This document shows positions 12,275 to 63,565 of a DNA stretch of 64,000 bases, in pieces. The notes beneath the pieces were generated by a model. The model worked only from the letters and a program-made list of their open reading frames with translations. It ran no database searches and was not told the DNA's origin. A program made the position numbers and the translations under genes. The DNA lies in IMG/VR virus record IMGVR_UViG_3300005253_001115, positions 186,001 to 250,000 of that record, one strand, 5' to 3'. The first letter of the stretch is position 1. The number at the start of each line of letters is the position of its first letter.

Positions 12275-13726
12275 ATGATTACTGGAATGCTTGAAGACAA
12301 TTTCATCCTGGCGGCTGACTCATACAAGGTCGGCCACATCAACCACCTCCCGATAGGGACTCGCAAGACCCACACCTCCATGGTGCCACGGAAGCCCTTC
12401 GTGGACGAGGAACACGGTATCTTGATTGACGAAATCGTCGTTCTCGGTCCCCAGGTCGTCGCTGCGGTCCTCCAGTCTGTAGTCATCACCGATGCGATGA
12501 TTGACGAGGCCGAAATCGAAATCACGGAACAGGGTTACGACTTCCCCCGAGCACAATGGGAATACCTTCGTGACCTTGGGTACCTGCCTCTCGACGTGCG
12601 GGCGATGCCGGAAGGCACTATCGTACAGCCCGGTATCCCGATCATGACGATCGAGAACACGGACGACCGCTCCGCGTGGCTCCCCGCCTACGTCGAGACG
12701 TGGACCCAGGATATCGTGTGGTGTCTTTCGACTATTGCCTCCAAGGTTCGCTGGCTTCGTAATCAGGTGGATATCTTCAACGAGAACACCGGCTGCGACT
12801 ACGAGAACGGCGAGTACATGATCCACAACTTTGGGGATCGTGGGGCTGGTGGACGAGACGGGGCCATCATGGCTGGCATCGCTCACGCCGTGTTCTTCAG
12901 TGGGTCCGACTGCCTTTCGGCTAACCGTTACATCAAGCGGATCTACAACATGGACGGCCCGGTGCTGTCCTCGGTGGATGCCAACGAACACTCGACGGTA
13001 TGTGCCAACTCTGACTGCGATAACAAGGACGACTCGGCAGCGTTCGAGATGACCCTCGCGAATCTGGAGAAGGTGGTAGAGCGCGCCAACCGGGGCATCG
13101 GGGTTCCGGTCCAGTCATGCTTGATCGACACTTTCGATGACGAGCGGTACATCAAGGAGTTCGTGATTCCGAACATCAAGCGGATCAGAGAAAGCGGCGG
13201 CAAGTACGTATGCCGCCCGGACTCGGGAAACGCCATCACGAAGCCTATCGAGGTATGCCAGTGGCTTCTCGATGGATTCGGTCCCGGTCGGCTACTAAAT
13301 TGCAGGGAGTTCGAGATGCTTCCCGAGTACCTTGGAGTCATCCAAGGTGACGGGCTGAAGCTGTGGGACTTCACTACCATCTTCCGGCTTGCCGAGAAGA
13401 ACAAGCTGGCGGCTAGCAACTTCGTCTTCGGCTTCGGTGGTGGCCTGACCAATGGCTCCGGTCGGGACGACTTCAGCTTCTCGATGAAGGCCACAGCCCG
13501 CCAGAACGCTGCCGGTGTATGGGAAGCCATGCACAAGCAACCCAAGACGGACCCGGGCAAGAACTCGCTCCGGGGCCGGGTCGGGGTAATCTCCAAGGGT
13601 GGACAGTTCGTCGTATCAGAATACGAATACGGTGAGTATCATCAGGAAATGGTCTCCATCTATTTCGACGGCGGTCTGCTCTACACCCGGGCCTTCGATG
13701 AGGTCCGAGAAGCAGCGAGGATGTAG
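12275..13726 (+). CDS. nadV: nicotinamide phosphoribosyltransferase
   Basis: DSYKVGH, PEGT, HNFGDRG, ANEHS, CRPDSG, VIQGDG, FGFGGGL, RDDFSFSMKAT, KQPKTDPGKNS. Confidence 0.93.
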   Translation: MITGMLEDNFILAADSYKVGHINHLPIGTRKTHTSMVPRKPFVDEEHGILIDEIVVLGPQVVAAVLQSVVITDAMIDEAEIEITEQGYDFPRAQWEYLRDLGYLPLDVRAMPEGTIVQPGIPIMTIENTDDRSAWLPAYVETWTQDIVWCLSTIASKVRWLRNQVDIFNENTGCDYENGEYMIHNFGDRGAGGRDGAIMAGIAHAVFFSGSDCLSANRYIKRIYNMDGPVLSSVDANEHSTVCANSDCDNKDDSAAFEMTLANLEKVVERANRGIGVPVQSCLIDTFDDERYIKEFVIPNIKRIRESGGKYVCRPDSGNAITKPIEVCQWLLDGFGPGRLLNCREFEMLPEYLGVIQGDGLKLWDFTTIFRLAEKNKLAASNFVFGFGGGLTNGSGRDDFSFSMKATARQNAAGVWEAMHKQPKTDPGKNSLRGRVGVISKGGQFVVSEYEYGEYHQEMVSIYFDGGLLYTRAFDEVREAARM

Positions 13727-55578: not shown

Positions 55579-56115
55579 CTAGTTGCCCCTTTCTTTCATC
55601 TTTTTGGCCCACTTCTTCTGCCACTCGGACTGCGGAGTGTCGTTCAGAATATCCTCGACCGAAGCCGTAGCCCTGTGTGGCCCAGAGGCTCTTGTTTGCG
55701 ATCTACGGGCTTTTCTCCTTCTAGGCGATGGCGGAGTGGCCTTAGCGAAGAGGTGGTCCCTCTGCTCGTCATAGTAACCGTCAGGGCCAGATTTGTAATA
55801 CTTCAGGGTTGGATCGTTGGTTCCCCAGTTCGGCGGGGGCGGCTTCCTTCTGGCTTCCTTCCGCTTCTTCTCCCTATGGTGGTAAGAGGTCCCCGTGGGG
55901 GGTTTTGACCTTATCACCGGCTCTCGGTACGGACACTTCCCTGCCTTGGTGGGGTTGGTGATTGCTCGGTAGGCCCAATTGACCAATTGGAACTCCATAT
56001 CTGGTAGATCCGGGTTCAGGTCAGGATGGGTTTCCCTGGAGAGCTTCCGGTAAGCGTTCTTGATCCGCTTCCTAGTGGAACCTCTTTCAATTTCGAGCAC
56101 CTTGTACGGGTCCAT
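55579..56115 (-). CDS. J-domain (DnaJ-like) protein
   Basis: MDPYKVLEI...IKNAYRKLSRETHPDLN...FQLVNWAY. Confidence 0.85.
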   Translation of the reverse strand: MDPYKVLEIERGSTRKRIKNAYRKLSRETHPDLNPDLPDMEFQLVNWAYRAITNPTKAGKCPYREPVIRSKPPTGTSYHHREKKRKEARRKPPPPNWGTNDPTLKYYKSGPDGYYDEQRDHLFAKATPPSPRRRKARRSQTRASGPHRATASVEDILNDTPQSEWQKKWAKKMKERGN

Positions 56116-56273: not shown

Positions 56274-56678
56274 TCATTTTCTCTCCTCTGCCGCGAAATG
56301 CTGCTGAACATCCGACAGAAGCTCGTCCAGCTTCCCCTCAAGGATGTCCTTGTAGCGATAGGTCTTCCCGGAACGGTGGTCCTTCACACGCTGATCGGAC
56401 TCGTGATAAGTCCTTACACGTTCTGTACTTGTAGCCTCTACTTGCGTTTTAGCGGCCTCTTTCATCAGAGGCACGAGGATATTCGTCATGCGCTTGAAGG
56501 CAGCCTTCTTGTTCTTTCCCTGCTCCTTATGCTCCTCGGCTTTAGCTGTAATCCCAGTTTCTACATGTGTTAATCGAACAGCCGTATCCCTTTTATTTCG
56601 ATTTTGACCACCTTTGCCGCTAGCGCGGTAGTAGTCGATTCTGATGTCTTCTTTACGAACTGTCTGTGGCCACGCCAT
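56274..56678 (-). CDS. stand-alone GGQ peptide release factor domain protein (ArfB/PrfH-like)
   Basis: YRASGKGGQNRNKRDTAVRLTH...Q..NK..A...RVRTY...RVKDHR; start MAWPQT. Confidence 0.88.
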   Translation of the reverse strand: MAWPQTVRKEDIRIDYYRASGKGGQNRNKRDTAVRLTHVETGITAKAEEHKEQGKNKKAAFKRMTNILVPLMKEAAKTQVEATSTERVRTYHESDQRVKDHRSGKTYRYKDILEGKLDELLSDVQQHFAAEERK

Positions 56679-56736: not shown

Positions 56737-57540
56737 ATGTTACTATCATTGCCTTTTGAAGAGATAATTGCACGGTACCAGAAAGGAGAATCCCAAGCAC
56801 AACTTGCTAATAGCTTTAGTGTAGACCGGCGAACTATTAGGAGAAGGCTGGTTAAAGCTGATATACCTCTTAGGTCTGGTGGAGAGGCTTCCAAGGTCCA
56901 AAAAAACAAAGCCTTTACTGCATCCACTGTGGTAAACGAATTGGTCGATGGAATGTTATTAGGTGATGCTTGGATAGAGCAAGGACAAGACAACGCTCGC
57001 CTTGGTATTGAAGTGACCAAAAAATCCGAAGGGTGGATAGAACAGATATCTGATATCCTCACAGCGCACGAGGTCAAGCATTCCATAGGGTATAGAAAAC
57101 CCAGAGAAAAAATAATAAACGGCATTCATACCCGATCAAAGGAAAGCGTTATGCTTAGGACCAGTCTATATCCTAATTTTGCTGTCCAAAGACTACGGTG
57201 GTATCCAGAAGGTACAAAAATAGTGCCCAGAGATTTAGAACTTACTGCAAGTAGTATAGCTCATTGGTATTGGGGTGACGGATCAACCAGCAAGTATATG
57301 GTCCGTCTATACACGAACAATTTCTTAGAAAAAGACTGTGAATTCCTAGTAAGCTGTCTGTTGGAGTTCGGAGTAAGTTTTTCAATAAGCAAAAGTCGCA
57401 AAAATCCTGTTCTTAGTCTGTACAACAATTCTGAAAGAGAAAGGTTTCTGGACCTAGTTCGGGACCACGTTCCAGAATGTTTCGAATACAAAGTACAAAA
57501 ACCTGTAATAGTGAGAAGAAGCAAGCCTACTCTTTTTTGA
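56737..57540 (+). CDS. LAGLIDADG homing endonuclease with N-terminal HTH
   Basis: GMLLGDAWI and HWYWGDGS motifs, WYPEGTKIVP, LYTNNF, FEYK; AT-rich. Confidence 0.85.
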   Translation: MLLSLPFEEIIARYQKGESQAQLANSFSVDRRTIRRRLVKADIPLRSGGEASKVQKNKAFTASTVVNELVDGMLLGDAWIEQGQDNARLGIEVTKKSEGWIEQISDILTAHEVKHSIGYRKPREKIINGIHTRSKESVMLRTSLYPNFAVQRLRWYPEGTKIVPRDLELTASSIAHWYWGDGSTSKYMVRLYTNNFLEKDCEFLVSCLLEFGVSFSISKSRKNPVLSLYNNSERERFLDLVRDHVPECFEYKVQKPVIVRRSKPTLF

Positions 57541-57546
57541 AAATTC

Positions 57547-57980
57547 CTGCGCCGTAGACACCATAGTACCGGATTACACTGTCATGTTGGTCTACGGCGC
57601 AGAACGAGGCACGGCATTCTCCTTTTGGATTACACTGCTATGTAGGACGTTCCTCTTTGAAAATTCCTGCGCCGCAGACATCATAATGTCGGGTTACATC
57701 ACCGAGTCGGTCTGCGGCGCAAGTTAAAATGTAGTAGACACGGCAAGACCACTCGGGCTACAACTTCAACACGGCCGTGTCTACTGTGTTAGAAAAGGAG
57801 GCGCGACATTCTCCTTTTGGGTTACACTGCTATGTGGGCCGTGCCTCTTTGAAAATTCCTGCGCTGCATGGCACGGCTCTGGGGGGTTACAACATCGCTA
57901 AGGCCACACAGCGCAGGTTAAAATGTAGTAGACACGGCATATCCCAAACGGGTTACAACATTCTGCTGGCCGTGTCTACT
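57547..57980 (-). ncRNA. TIGR-like stem-loop guide array A (7 units)
   Basis: Each unit on + strand: stem-CA-N9-NGG(G/A)TTACA-N9-NGG-stem; cores at 57559, 57615, 57679, 57744 (8-nt first spacer, GGGCTACA), 57807, 57872, 57938. Confidence 0.88.
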
Positions 57981-57989
57981 TTCGTTAGA

Positions 57990-58814
57990 TCAATCCGATA
58001 CCTTCCGCCACTGCTTCCACAGTTCCCGCAGGATGCGCTTCGACAGGAGCCTACGCTGGTGTAGGAAGATGTGGCCCGTTGTCCAGTCAGGGTGTGCAGC
58101 AGCAGCTTTGGCCTTCACTCCCTCAGAATATTGGTAGAATTCATTGTTGGTCTTCTTGCCGTTCTGGTGAACAGTACCCTGCACAACGAACATCATGGAT
58201 CTCCTGCTCGGGTTGTAACCGTGCAGTTTAGCCATTTCAGTGCCACGTCGAAGGCGCTGGCGAACCATGGGATCTTGCGCATTCTCGGACACCATACCTA
58301 GCCCAAAACGCTTCCACAATTTAGCGGGCGTGGCGAAATTACGCAAGTCGGCTCCGGCTTCTGCCAATATCCTTCCTACAGCTAGGAGGCTCAGGCCGGG
58401 GGTTCCTTTACCGGGGCGACCAACCCACGAAGCGATCGGCATACCTGCCACTATGGCAGTGATGTCTTTGTGGTATTGCCTTATTTGGGGGTCGAAGCCC
58501 CTGATAGCAGGGACCATAGCGAGCGCCATAATCTCCACTTTCGCAGCAAATACCTCTATTGGGTCGGTGGAGGTCCGATCAATCTCGTCAGGCTTCACAT
58601 GCAACATCCACTTTTTGTGGACGGCAGTTGCCAGCGCTCCGTCTTTTGTGCAGAGAGCGTACTTCTTAACGAAGCACGTCTTACCTTTGCAGTGGTGGTC
58701 CTGCACAGCACGCTTGATGACGCCATGTAACTGCTGGTTGAGGGACTCTCTTGCTCTCTCAAGATTCAGACAATCTCTATGGAGGCCGAGGAGTTTAGTG
58801 ATTTCGTTGTGCAT
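57990..58814 (-). CDS. Nop-domain / IS110 C-terminal-like RNA-binding protein lacking a nuclease domain (TasA-like)
   Basis: Starts directly with a coiled coil; PGLSLLAVGRILAEAG.DLRNFATPAKLWKRFGLG, GYNPSRRS, H..QRRLLSKRILRELWKQWR; no DEDD/RuvC or HNH domain and no IS110 SSG motif. Confidence 0.82.
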   Translation of the reverse strand: MHNEITKLLGLHRDCLNLERARESLNQQLHGVIKRAVQDHHCKGKTCFVKKYALCTKDGALATAVHKKWMLHVKPDEIDRTSTDPIEVFAAKVEIMALAMVPAIRGFDPQIRQYHKDITAIVAGMPIASWVGRPGKGTPGLSLLAVGRILAEAGADLRNFATPAKLWKRFGLGMVSENAQDPMVRQRLRRGTEMAKLHGYNPSRRSMMFVVQGTVHQNGKKTNNEFYQYSEGVKAKAAAAHPDWTTGHIFLHQRRLLSKRILRELWKQWRKVSD

Positions 58815-58829
58815 TTTCTAATCCTTGTA

Positions 58830-59152
58830 GGAGCGGCACGGAATGCTCCAAACGGGTTACACTGCATCTATGTCCGTGCCGCTCCGTAATATAGGGCGGT
58901 TGGTCAATGAGATTTCGGGTTACAAATGGGAGTTGGACCAACCATCCTGTAAAGTTGGGGCGACGCCGCACAGCGGATTCGGGTTGCATGAGCGCATCGA
59001 CAGCGTAGCCCCTTTGTAAGTTATGAGCGGCGCGACACTCTCCCAAAGGGTTGCATCACGGCGGTGGTCGCGCCGCTCTGTTATATTGAGTATTTTAGTG
59101 AGGTTGGTCACTCTTCTAGAGGGTTACACCGGTCTTTTGGACCAGCCTCACT
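58830..59152 (-). ncRNA. TIGR-like stem-loop guide array B (5 units)
   Basis: Same architecture; cores at 58842, 58905, 58969, 59036, 59109. Confidence 0.88.
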
Positions 59153-59157
59153 GTGAT

Positions 59158-59739
59158 TTACATGTAAGTCCTCTCGCGTAGTCTCTCGACAAACTCATCC
59201 TGAACGACTGAGCCTACCGTGCGCTTGTCTCCGGCGGAGACGCCTTCGGCCTGCATCTTGTCTGCAATGGCGAAGAGCATCCGTGCGTCACGTCCGAAGG
59301 TGCCAGACTTCTTGTCTCGCATCTGCGCCTCGGTGGTCACCTGATCGAACGTAGCAGAGCGCAACTTCACGCCCCCGTGGGTCAGGTAGAATGTGTCCAT
59401 GTAGAGCGCAGCGACGGTCTCAGCACTTGCTGCGTCGGCTGCTGCTGTTCTCTTGGACTTGTTTGGCTTGGCGGCTCCGGTTGAGGGTGCCTGGGGCGTG
59501 ATAGGCAGAACCCGAGACTGCGACCGAAGTCGCTGCACGATGTTGTTGATCTGACTGTTGGCGAAGCGCTTCCAGACTTCCGTCTCGATAGCAGACGCCA
59601 TCGCAGGGCTCAGATTATCAATCTCAGCATCAGCGACAGCAAGAAAGGCAGCTTTCGCCTTCTCCCAATCTCCGCTGCTTGCTGTCCACGCTGTCTCAGC
59701 CCACTTGGCAAAGACCTCTTCTATGTCTACGGAACTCAT
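59158..59739 (-). CDS. unknown protein embedded between guide arrays
   Basis: 193-aa ORF with AAGGA SD, co-oriented with the TasA-like gene. Confidence 0.75.
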   Translation of the reverse strand: MSSVDIEEVFAKWAETAWTASSGDWEKAKAAFLAVADAEIDNLSPAMASAIETEVWKRFANSQINNIVQRLRSQSRVLPITPQAPSTGAAKPNKSKRTAAADAASAETVAALYMDTFYLTHGGVKLRSATFDQVTTEAQMRDKKSGTFGRDARMLFAIADKMQAEGVSAGDKRTVGSVVQDEFVERLRERTYM

Positions 59740-59787
59740 ACGTTTTCCTTCTTTATCCCCGTGGCAAAATCGCCCGGTGGAAATGTA

Positions 59788-59903
59788 GCGGTCCTGACAC
59801 CTTGAAAGTGGGTTACAAGTTCTTTATGGTCAGGACCGCCGTTGAAGTATAGCAGGTCGGTCAGTGGCGACAAGGGTTACAAACACAGAAAGGACCGACA
59901 CTG
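59788..59903 (-). ncRNA. TIGR-like stem-loop guide array C (2 units)
   Basis: Cores at 59798 and 59862 with inverted-repeat stems. Confidence 0.85.
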
Positions 59904-59931: not shown

Positions 59932-60387
59932 TCAGCTTTCAACCTCTTTCTTCTCCAAGTAGAAGAAATCCAGACCCTCAGGTTCTTTCTCTCCTCGAAA
60001 GATGAGAGCAGCAGCCCCCATGCAAATATTGTCACCTAGGATCTTCTGTACCTTGGCAACCGCTTGCCCAGAAGACACCACATCGTCCACGATAAGGTAC
60101 TTCTTTTTGCTGAACCCAGGGCCGCGCGTGCGGTTCTCCAGGGTTAGCACCTTCACTCGTGGCTTGTTGAGTATCCCGGCCACCACGAAGGCAAGCTCGA
60201 TGCCGCCGATAATCGGGGTGGCGATAAAGTCTATCTCGTCTCGCAACGTTTCGGGGATCAACTCTGCAAGTTGCTCTGCATACTCTGTCGTAGCTCGGCT
60301 GTCGAGTAGATCGAAGTCGTAGTAATACGGAGAACTCCTACCAGAGGTAAGTTCGTGGTCTTCTTTGATCCGGCATTCCTCGAACAT
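59932..60387 (-). CDS. orotate phosphoribosyltransferase-like type I PRTase
   Basis: LTSGRSSPYYYD, PRPP-binding LIVDDVVSSG. Confidence 0.78.
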   Translation of the reverse strand: MFEECRIKEDHELTSGRSSPYYYDFDLLDSRATTEYAEQLAELIPETLRDEIDFIATPIIGGIELAFVVAGILNKPRVKVLTLENRTRGPGFSKKKYLIVDDVVSSGQAVAKVQKILGDNICMGAAALIFRGEKEPEGLDFFYLEKKEVES

Positions 60388-62554: not shown

Positions 62555-63565
62555 TTAGATCGTTTCTCTGAAAAGCGAGGAGATGCTCTCTTCGTTGTTG
62601 GTGCGGCGAATTGCCTCACCCATTAGAGGTGCGATGCTTACTACCTGCACCTTGTTGTAACCGTCGTTCTCGGCGTTACGCGGGATTGGGTCTCGGGCAA
62701 TCAAAGCCACTGTATCGGTGGTGAGCAGCTTCGTGAGCCCCTTCGTGTTGCCCATAGTCTTGTAGGCGTTCCCCGAGAGAACCGGGTGTGTGATGGCCGC
62801 AATGGCGCTCGTTGCGCCCTGCTCCATCAGGGCATCGACGCCCTTGCACAAGGTACCGGCAGTGTCGATCATATCGTCAACAATCACGCAGACTTGACCC
62901 TCCACATCGCCTACGATATTCATGACTTCGTTCTCGTTGGAGCGAGCACGCCGCTTGTCGATGATGGCGATCGGTGCCTCAAGCCTCTTGGCGTAAGCCC
63001 GTGCCCTCTCTGTACCACCAGCATCCGGCGATATGATAGTGAAGGGGGTGAGTCCCACTTCCTTGCGGACAGATTCCAATAGAACAGGCTTGGCGTACAG
63101 GTTGTCTACCGGGCAATCGAAGAACGCCTGGATCTGCCCGGCATGCAGGTCCATGCACATTACACGGTCTGCGCCAGCCCTGTCGATCAGGGACGCTACC
63201 AGCTTGGAAGTGATGGGCATTCGAGCAGCGTTCTGCTGGTCCTGGCGAGAGTACCCGAAGTACGGGATGACTGCTGTGATGCGACCAGCAGAGGACCGAC
63301 GCAAGGCGTCGATCATAATGAGCAGTTCCATCAGGTTCCGGTTGGTGTGGGGCGGGCAAGTCGGTTGGACGATGAAACAATCAGCGCCTCTTACGTTCTC
63401 CCCGATTGCTACCTTGATCTCACCGTCGCTGAAACGATCTACCTCGGCCTTGCCTAGAGGGCGGTCCAGATAATCAGCCACGTCGTGGGCTAGCTGGGGG
63501 TTGGCGTTTCCAGTGAATACCCGGATATCACCCTTCATTCCTCGCTCCTTCATTTGTTGTACCAT
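62555..63565 (-). CDS. prs: ribose-phosphate pyrophosphokinase (PRPP synthetase)
   Basis: FSDGE, NLMELLIMIDALRRSSA, PYFGYSRQD, DLHAGQIQAFF, SPDAGG, IVDDMIDTAGT, THPVLS; start may be 63538. Confidence 0.93.
   Translation of the reverse strand: MVQQMKERGMKGDIRVFTGNANPQLAHDVADYLDRPLGKAEVDRFSDGEIKVAIGENVRGADCFIVQPTCPPHTNRNLMELLIMIDALRRSSAGRITAVIPYFGYSRQDQQNAARMPITSKLVASLIDRAGADRVMCMDLHAGQIQAFFDCPVDNLYAKPVLLESVRKEVGLTPFTIISPDAGGTERARAYAKRLEAPIAIIDKRRARSNENEVMNIVGDVEGQVCVIVDDMIDTAGTLCKGVDALMEQGATSAIAAITHPVLSGNAYKTMGNTKGLTKLLTTDTVALIARDPIPRNAENDGYNKVQVVSIAPLMGEAIRRTNNEESISSLFRETI

Follow-up and report, generated by a model that had tools for sequence, protein, structure and literature searches.

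The window analyzed here is a stretch of 64,000 nucleotides from the IMG/VR virus record IMGVR_UViG_3300005253_001115 (positions 186,001 to 250,000 of that record). It contains a locus at 57545-59899 that is very probably a stem-loop-type TIGR-Tas system with a nuclease-free Tas protein (TasA class) on the genome of a large marine-sediment phage. The locus consists of 14 hairpin units, each the predicted source of a tigRNA with two guide spacers, arranged around the gene for a 274-amino-acid Tas protein (tasA, 57990-58814, minus strand) and a gene for a 193-amino-acid protein (59158-59739, minus strand). Every sequence-level hallmark of the stem-loop TIGR-TasA family is found in it. Because this architecture has already been published, the locus is not a new kind of system, and an earlier note on this DNA overrated its novelty. 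Faure et al. 2025 (PMC12045711, section 9, Fig. 7) describe stem-loop TIGR arrays with TasA, including an example whose 13 hairpins form three sub-arrays and are expressed and processed.

All 14 tigRNA units lie on the minus strand and were verified in the window sequence. Each consists of a stem, CCN, a 9-nt spacer A, UG-UAAC-CCN, a 9-nt spacer B, UG and the second strand of the stem, so that the loop closed by the stem is 32 nt long with box C and box D counted in. We name the elements within this loop box C (CCN), box D' (UG), UAAC, box C' (CCN) and box D (UG). Across the units (CCN-9-UG UAAC CCN-9-UG) the boxes change little or not at all, whereas the spacers are variable. The loop motif TG[TC]A[AG][TC]CC is found at 14 minus-strand sites between 57578 and 59881, whereas the remaining ~61.6 kb of this strand has only 4 and the entire plus strand 13. 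Counted along the transcript, the units form three sub-arrays of 2+5+7 around the two genes: two units upstream of the 193-amino-acid gene (59787-59899), five between this gene and tasA (58830-59152) and seven downstream of tasA (57545-57980). The motif count and these coordinates bear out the 14 units in a 7+5+2 window order that had been proposed. A relaxed scan of the window detects no units outside of the locus. A/T-rich linkers separate the hairpins. No Rfam family matches the units, and no snoRNA family scores at a meaningful level.

Two open reading frames overlap the middle sub-array, one of 58 amino acids on the plus strand (58843-59019) and one of 83 amino acids on the minus strand (58795-59046). 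The former is annotated as a gene in public gene calls (locus L001, 9796-9972), and this annotation is almost certainly a false call over the tigRNA hairpins.

The stems vary in sequence from unit to unit while their pairing is maintained. We split the units by script into their stem strands, boxes, spacers and loop, which gave an alignment (A3) of 14 units and 60 columns, and scored a structure with 15 pairs in the stem and one more inside the loop. Paired cells make up 83.5% of the stem positions, compared with 53.6% in shuffled alignments and 34-49% when the partners are slid. Both sides change in 15 of 15 stem pairs, and the observed covariation score is reached by none of 500 shuffles. 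A compensatory change between units 1 and 3 (GCCGTAGA/TCTACGGC versus GCCGCAGA/TCTGCGGC) illustrates this pattern. Pairing also joins the first C of CCN to the G of the closing UG. In unit 8 this pair takes the form A-U and in unit 10 the form U-G, so both variant units support the structure. The expected hairpin is the minimum-energy fold in 12 of the 14 units. The earlier claim that the stems always pair holds, with the refinement that the stems of units 2 and 5 are imperfect. Script assertions confirmed letter by letter every spacer pair in that description, including the 8-nt spacer B of unit 4, as well as the box variants ACA/TT of unit 8 and TCG of unit 10. Units 2 and 5 carry identical guides, so the stated total of 13 distinct guides is also right.

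The assignment of the 274-amino-acid protein rests on profile searches, an NCBIfam match and an AlphaFold model compared by Foldseek. Searched as a single sequence, the protein matches nothing in Pfam (E up to 1) or in the PDB, and its weak PHROGs match is to a family labelled 'transposase'. Among 5.8 billion clusters there are just 8 close relatives, and a profile of these 8 alone has no PDB match. This same profile recovers 2,381 cluster representatives, 1,637 of them at E up to 1e-10, that share the C-terminal ~170 residues. A profile from a 73-member alignment (A2) matches TaTasR (9mty_A, E=6.8e-26) and TasH (9w04 and related entries, E=6.4e-13), and the homology to TasR begins at residue 137 of 9mty_A, after the RuvC domain. 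The NCBIfam model NF052498 (TIGR_Tas_endo, "TIGR-Tas system RNA-guided endonuclease") matches the single sequence over residues 112-270 (E=1.1e-10), and 23 of the 73 family members match Pfam Transposase_20, the IS110 C-terminal domain.

The AlphaFold (AF2) model built with A2 has a predicted local distance difference test (pLDDT) score of 95.7 and a predicted TM-score (pTM) of 0.90, and it is all-helical apart from one short hairpin. A model from 8 sequences is poor in the Nop domain (pLDDT 62), so the 73-sequence alignment solved the problems of both the PDB profile search and the structure prediction. Residues 1 to ~100 form a probable coiled-coil part and residues ~100-273 a Nop-type RNA-binding C-terminal domain. 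Long helices span residues 2-37, 56-72 and 85-123, and the alignment to 9MTY covers 269 columns. In a Foldseek search of the PDB with this model, TIGR-TasR 9MTY ranks first (E=3.9e-4, TM 0.56/0.52), followed by IS621/ISCro4 and then archaeal Nop5, which is the order expected for a Tas protein. The best viral structural match is annotated as an IS110-family protein. Thus, the Nop-, IS110- or Tas-like fold that had been proposed for 57990-58814 is upheld by the profile, NCBIfam and Foldseek results. The proposed lack of a nuclease agrees with the absence of a RuvC or HNH domain from the model and of any Pfam match, and this absence together with the all-helical model places the protein in the TasA class. 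The last helix comprises residues 246-273 of 274 with no C-terminal extension, so the protein lacks the Y/H tigRNA-processing loop of dual-repeat systems. Between the first two long helices there is an H-x-C-x4-C-x7-C insertion (residues 40-55; 58650-58697, minus strand) that is specific to this clade and conserved in those close homologues that cover the region. It is possibly a zinc knuckle at the tip of the coiled coil.

The locus shares its plan with PlTasA from a Peromyscus leucopus gut contig, for which Guan et al. 2026 (bioRxiv 10.64898/2026.08.11.744272) report a cryo-electron microscopy (cryo-EM) structure that includes a tigRNA of the stem-loop type as well as target DNA. Both proteins are nuclease-free and have a Nop domain, which in the window protein, too, would be combined with a coiled coil, and in both arrays about 13-14 hairpin units on the gene strand are divided into three sub-arrays, with stems that are variable yet always pair and a 9-nt element between the spacers. 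The proteins are only remotely related, however, and the window Tas joins the family at about 25-30% identity. Box C is CCN in the window locus, two of its sub-arrays are separated by the conserved 193-amino-acid gene instead of by noncoding DNA, and it resides on a marine-sediment phage of at least 266 kb. Expression, processing and structure have been shown for PlTasA.

Xu et al. 2026 (bioRxiv 10.64898/2026.09.09.750476) catalogued 2,559 stem-loop arrays and reported a base pair between the box C cytosine and the box D guanine as well as a 9-nt inter-spacer loop. They found that TasA binds its target in an electrophoretic mobility shift assay (EMSA) and represses transcription in a guide-dependent and reversible manner. 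Transcriptional repression by binding without cutting, the role that the earlier note had proposed, has since been demonstrated for these other TasA proteins. The stem-loop Tas proteins that they showed to be RNA-guided transcriptional repressors (MbTasA, BlTasA, CsTasR and PateTasR) have in common with the window locus the stem-loop plan, the 9-nt loop, the cytosine-guanine pair, the lack of a C-terminal Y/H processing loop and the presence of units both upstream and downstream of tas. In contrast, the window locus has no intragenic units, and the H-x-C-x4-C-x7-C tip insertion is specific to its clade. TaTasR (9MTY) and SpTasH (9W04) have a homologous Nop-type C-terminal domain and the same two-spacer guide logic, but they carry RuvC or HNH nuclease domains that the window protein does not have, and they cut DNA. 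Their arrays consist of strict dual repeats that yield 36-nt tigRNAs, whereas the window locus uses unit-specific stems instead of edge repeats. The contig names of the locus do not occur in the accessible part of the supplements of Faure et al. 2025.

Other families of RNA-guided or repeat-containing elements fit less well. IS110/IS621 elements and Nop5 small ribonucleoproteins (sRNPs) share the RNA-binding fold (Foldseek ranks 3-12) and a bipartite guide flanked by C/D-like boxes. The window locus differs from IS110/IS621 in that it lacks a DEDD catalytic domain and a single two-loop bridge RNA, and in that its guides are arrayed. We rejected an IS110-family recombinase for these reasons: there is no DEDD_Tnp_IS110 match, the N-terminus is helical, and 14 arrayed single-loop guides take the place of one bridge RNA. 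A box C/D small (nucleolar) ribonucleoprotein was rejected because K-turn boxes (RUGAUGA/CUGA) are absent and the boxes are reduced to CCN and UG; the locus genes that were scanned also include no match to fibrillarin or L7Ae. A CRISPR array was rejected because no repeat longer than the 9-nt loop is common to all units, the stems differ between units and there is no PADLOC match.

Related tas genes were collected from viral, metagenome and genome collections, and arrays of the same plan accompany them in at least 20 loci, a count that includes some duplicate records of the same contigs. These arrays are always on the tas strand, and at the family level their units can be described as stem, CNN, 9 nt, YG-NNN-YC-NN, 9 nt, NG and stem. 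A sister phage (L006; SDBV01005544.1) encodes a Tas protein that is 89% identical and has the same layout with 2+4+2 units. Between positional orthologues of the window and this phage, the boxes and loop are 85% identical, the stems 71%, spacer A 42% and spacer B 53%. The genes flanking the array are 86-92% identical at the DNA level, with a synonymous divergence (dS) of 0.15-0.26, so the guide parts turn over faster than neutral sites. Their turnover also far exceeds that of the remaining locus. The orthologue of unit 11 keeps its stem at 22 of 22 positions and spacer A at 8 of 9. In a more distant relative (L036:4852-5250, plus strand; Tas 48% identical), GCCGCCGGGCTC and its reverse complement take turns as the 12-nt stem arms. 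Each of these arms is common to two neighboring units, which makes the array intermediate between the stem-loop and dual-repeat types.

The seven-unit downstream sub-array (57545-57980) is a tandem duplication of a three-unit block and can be written A-B-C, A'-B'-C', B''. The sister phage has two units only at the corresponding place (L006:4674-4830). Units 5 and 2 (blocks C and C') have the identical guide and have lost pairing on different stem arms, such that a perfect stem results when the 5' arm of unit 5 is matched with the 3' arm of unit 2. Judged from these sequence relationships, the sub-array has evidently grown from two to seven units by duplication of the three-unit block. This history is concrete evidence that arrays can grow by segmental duplication with subsequent divergence of their spacers.

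The 193-amino-acid gene embedded between the sub-arrays is a conserved candidate partner of this Tas clade. Homologues lie directly upstream of tas in L006 (86% identical), L036 (48%) and L037 (38%), and tigRNA units adjoin the gene in every one of these loci. The family comprises 11 proteins only, with no homologues detectable outside of the Tas clade and none beside distant tas genes. Even as a profile, the protein has no match in Pfam, PHROGs, PADLOC, NCBIfam or the PDB. It consists of two conserved halves with a basic, proline-rich linker between them. One could picture a two-protein TIGR module in which this protein serves as an effector brought to the bound site, a tigRNA maturation factor or a regulator and the fast-evolving guides target the 5' ends of genes in the host or in rival phages, from the ribosome-binding site to the start codon. 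We regard this combination as unlikely. If it is true, then it would offer an initial look at the sites for which natural TasA guides are selected.

A mechanism for the locus can be proposed by analogy to the published relatives PlTasA, MbTasA, BlTasA and PateTasR. A minus-strand transcript would run through the locus, and cuts in the A/U-rich linkers, probably made by a host RNase, would yield tigRNAs of ~50-60 nt. A TasA dimer would hold each tigRNA by its two box C/D pairs, with one DNA strand pairing to spacer A and the adjacent 9 nt of the other strand to spacer B. TasR leaves 3' overhangs (PMC12045711), from which we deduce that one strand of the target carries the sequence of spacer B and, after it, the reverse complement of spacer A, and a gap of 0-2 nt may separate the two halves. 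The bound and bent 18-bp site could then block transcription or another DNA transaction without cleavage. With 13 distinct guides, up to 13 sites could be addressed, and by analogy the likely use is to silence genes of the host or of competing mobile elements during infection. TIGR-Tas systems matter more broadly as a new, compact class of RNA-guided DNA binders that is free of a protospacer-adjacent motif (PAM).

Several observations weigh against this assignment or the proposed function. The NF052498 match (41.9 bits) is under the curated cut-off of 100 bits, as is expected for a distant, nuclease-free member, and the Foldseek figures are modest (E 4e-4, TM-score about 0.55). The stems of units 2 and 5 are damaged (minimum free energy (MFE) z = -0.8 and -1.4, respectively), and spacer B of unit 4 has 8 nt. 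PateTasR uses CUU/UG boxes where the window has CCN/UG, and no conserved CUU is present at the window stem bases. Promoter and terminator scans gave nothing above shuffled expectation. A nuclease partner in trans, which may be the 193-amino-acid protein, is conceivable. No natural target was found either. A self-target scan of the window with both spacer orders, gaps of 0-2 nt and up to 3 mismatches gave 4 matches, about the chance expectation, of which 3 overlap the array itself, and outside of the array no guide matches the window at 2 or fewer mismatches. Scans of the window guides against L006, L036 and L037, and of the L006 guides against the window, returned 3-mismatch noise only; the single 2-mismatch match among the locus cross-scans is in L001, inside the array. 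In IMG/VR the 18-mers of guides 2/5, 13, 11, 8 and 1 have 8, 6, 4, 5 and 0 exact matches, and a swapped-halves control 18-mer has 10, so these counts are at the chance level. The exact matches of the five guides hit no contig twice and none is in the phage's own 266-kb contig. The contigs matched by guide 2/5, which were the ones compared, show no tblastx similarity to the window. Short spacers yield many false positives, as Xu et al. 2026 state themselves (Discussion).

Three other explanations of the locus deserve comparison with the stem-loop TasA reading. In a two-component effector, the TasA-tigRNA complex would find the site and the 193-amino-acid protein or a host factor would act there by cleavage, modification, or recruitment or exclusion, instead of simple steric repression. 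This scenario draws on the fact that the 193-amino-acid gene is directly upstream of tas, with units adjoining, in all four clade lineages and down to 38-48% identity, and that its family is about the size of the Tas clade and was not found next to distant tas genes. It is also in keeping with the occurrence of some TasA loci in operons with other genes, such as a ParB-like one (Faure et al. 2025). However, genes in a single narrow phage lineage may keep their order by descent without being functionally linked, and the protein matches no known domain, nuclease or otherwise. The ratio of nonsynonymous to synonymous substitution rates (dN/dS) relative to the sister phage is a relaxed 0.53 for its gene compared with 0.19 for tas, and other TasA proteins repress unaided (Xu et al. 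2026). A two-component effector is unlikely.

It is very improbable that the system works like a box C/D sRNP in which the spacers pair to single-stranded RNA, such as mRNA initiation regions or the 16S rRNA 3' end, and block translation. The Nop fold is common to RNA-targeting snoRNPs, and the predicted target of guide 2/5, AAAGGAGAACTGCTATGT, can be read as AAAGGAGAA-CTGCT-ATG-T, in which a gap of 7 nt would separate a Shine-Dalgarno sequence from a start codon. Inspected by eye, all 8 of its exact IMG/VR matches resemble gene starts (Shine-Dalgarno plus ATG), and Shine-Dalgarno-like 4-mers have a strand bias of 5:0 in the window's predicted targets. Yet this bias vanishes in 74 guides from relatives (10:8), and we therefore rejected a guide preference for ribosome-binding sites as anything beyond a weak lead. 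Two spacers that pair to opposite strands make sense for duplex DNA only, TasR is inactive on RNA substrates (PMC12045711, section 7), TasA binds double-stranded DNA according to EMSA and cryo-EM (Xu et al. 2026; Guan et al. 2026), and fibrillarin or L7Ae partners are missing from the scanned locus genes. We give almost no credence to the idea that the locus is an inert or decaying remnant, made up of an IS110-derived gene fragment and leftover hairpins without present function. The damaged stems of units 2 and 5, the 'transposase' label of the nearest PHROGs family and the empty target scans point in that direction. They are set against purifying selection on tas (the dN/dS of 0.19), compensatory changes that keep pairing at all 15 stem positions, boxes and loop that remain conserved relative to the sister phage while the spacers diversify, recurrence of the same plan in the related loci, and the absence of a DEDD domain or transposon ends.

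As a specimen of a stem-loop TIGR-TasA system, the locus has value because it resides on a 266-kb phage contig, so the surrounding genome comes with it. A close sister phage permits a direct comparison of guide turnover and array growth, and the clade-specific gene inside the array is a candidate accessory factor.

The individual units, all on the minus strand, are described here in order of transcription with their spacers as A / B. Unit 14 (59856-59899) is the first transcribed and has a 6-bp stem followed by CCT, spacer A TTCTGTGTT, loop TGTAACCCT, spacer B TGTCGCCAC and TG. Unit 13 (59787-59840; TAAAGAACT / CTTTCAAGG) has an 11-bp stem and an MFE z of -5.1. The middle sub-array begins with unit 12 (59097-59152; AAAGACCGG / CTAGAAGAG) and unit 11 (59025-59078; CCGCCGTGA / TTGGGAGAG), the latter with the loop TGCAACCCT. 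Unit 10 (58957-59012; ATGCGCTCA / AATCCGCTG) has TCG as box C and a U-G closing pair, and unit 9 (58893-58948; ACTCCCATT / AAATCTCAT) is without a counterpart in the sister phage. Unit 8 (58830-58885; TAGATGCAG / TTTGGAGCA), with boxes ACA / TT and an A-U closing pair, ends 15 nt ahead of the tas start codon.

Downstream of tasA, unit 7 (57927-57980; GCAGAATGT / TTTGGGATA) is block A and unit 6 (57858-57917; TAGCGATGT / CCAGAGCCG), with a 14-bp stem, is block B. Unit 5 (57798-57847; ACATAGCAG / AAAGGAGAA) is block C and has one stem mismatch (z = -1.4). The second copy of the block starts with unit 4 (A', 57733-57785), which has the same stem as unit 7, the loop TGTAGCCCG and spacers TGTTGAAGT / AGTGGTCT, the second of which is the 8-nt spacer. 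It continues with unit 3 (B', 57666-57723; ACTCGGTGA / ACATTATGA), whose guide is nearly conserved in the sister phage, and unit 2 (C', 57606-57655), which has the guide of unit 5, the loop TGTAATCCA and a degraded stem (z = -0.8) and is possibly a decaying copy. Unit 1 (B'', 57545-57604; ACATGACAG / GTACTATGG) is the last and has a 14-bp stem and the loop TGTAATCCG.

The array end at unit 1 meets a convergent, free-standing LAGLIDADG homing-endonuclease gene (56737-57540, plus strand; Pfam LAGLIDADG_2, 4e-22) that is absent at the corresponding place in the sister phage. Beyond this gene, a small RF-1-domain protein (56274-56678, minus strand; Pfam RF-1, 2e-23) resembles peptidyl-tRNA hydrolase or the rescue factor ArfB, and a DnaJ-domain protein is encoded just downstream of it (55579-56100, minus strand).

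The whole IMG/VR contig is 266,640 bp long, and the window carries phage replication and virion genes, in agreement with the earlier description of the system as phage-encoded. Genes in the window include those for a clamp loader, SSB, UvsX, SbcCD, primase, a sigma factor, ribonucleotide reductase and DNA ligase, as well as NAMPT, PRPP synthetase and a virion structural protein. With these genes, the window represents the part of a large phage (at least 266 kb) that is devoted to replication and nucleotide metabolism. The same locus is present in marine-sediment assemblies (PRJNA259156; JGI 3300005663; LAZR01000125.1). The phage GenBank collection has no DNA match to it, and the genome collection contains only distant relatives in metagenome-assembled genomes, which consequently give no clue to the host. 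The NAMPT gene is at 12275-13726 (plus strand), and PRPP synthetase (62555-63565) and a small phosphoribosyltransferase (59932-60387) are both encoded on the minus strand. Just outside of the window are two further genes, one of the Acb5 family and one that weakly matches S-adenosylmethionine lyase (L001:161-664 and L001:3118-3564). With NAD-salvage genes, an Acb5-family gene and a putative lyase gene nearby, the TIGR locus may sit among counter-defense genes.

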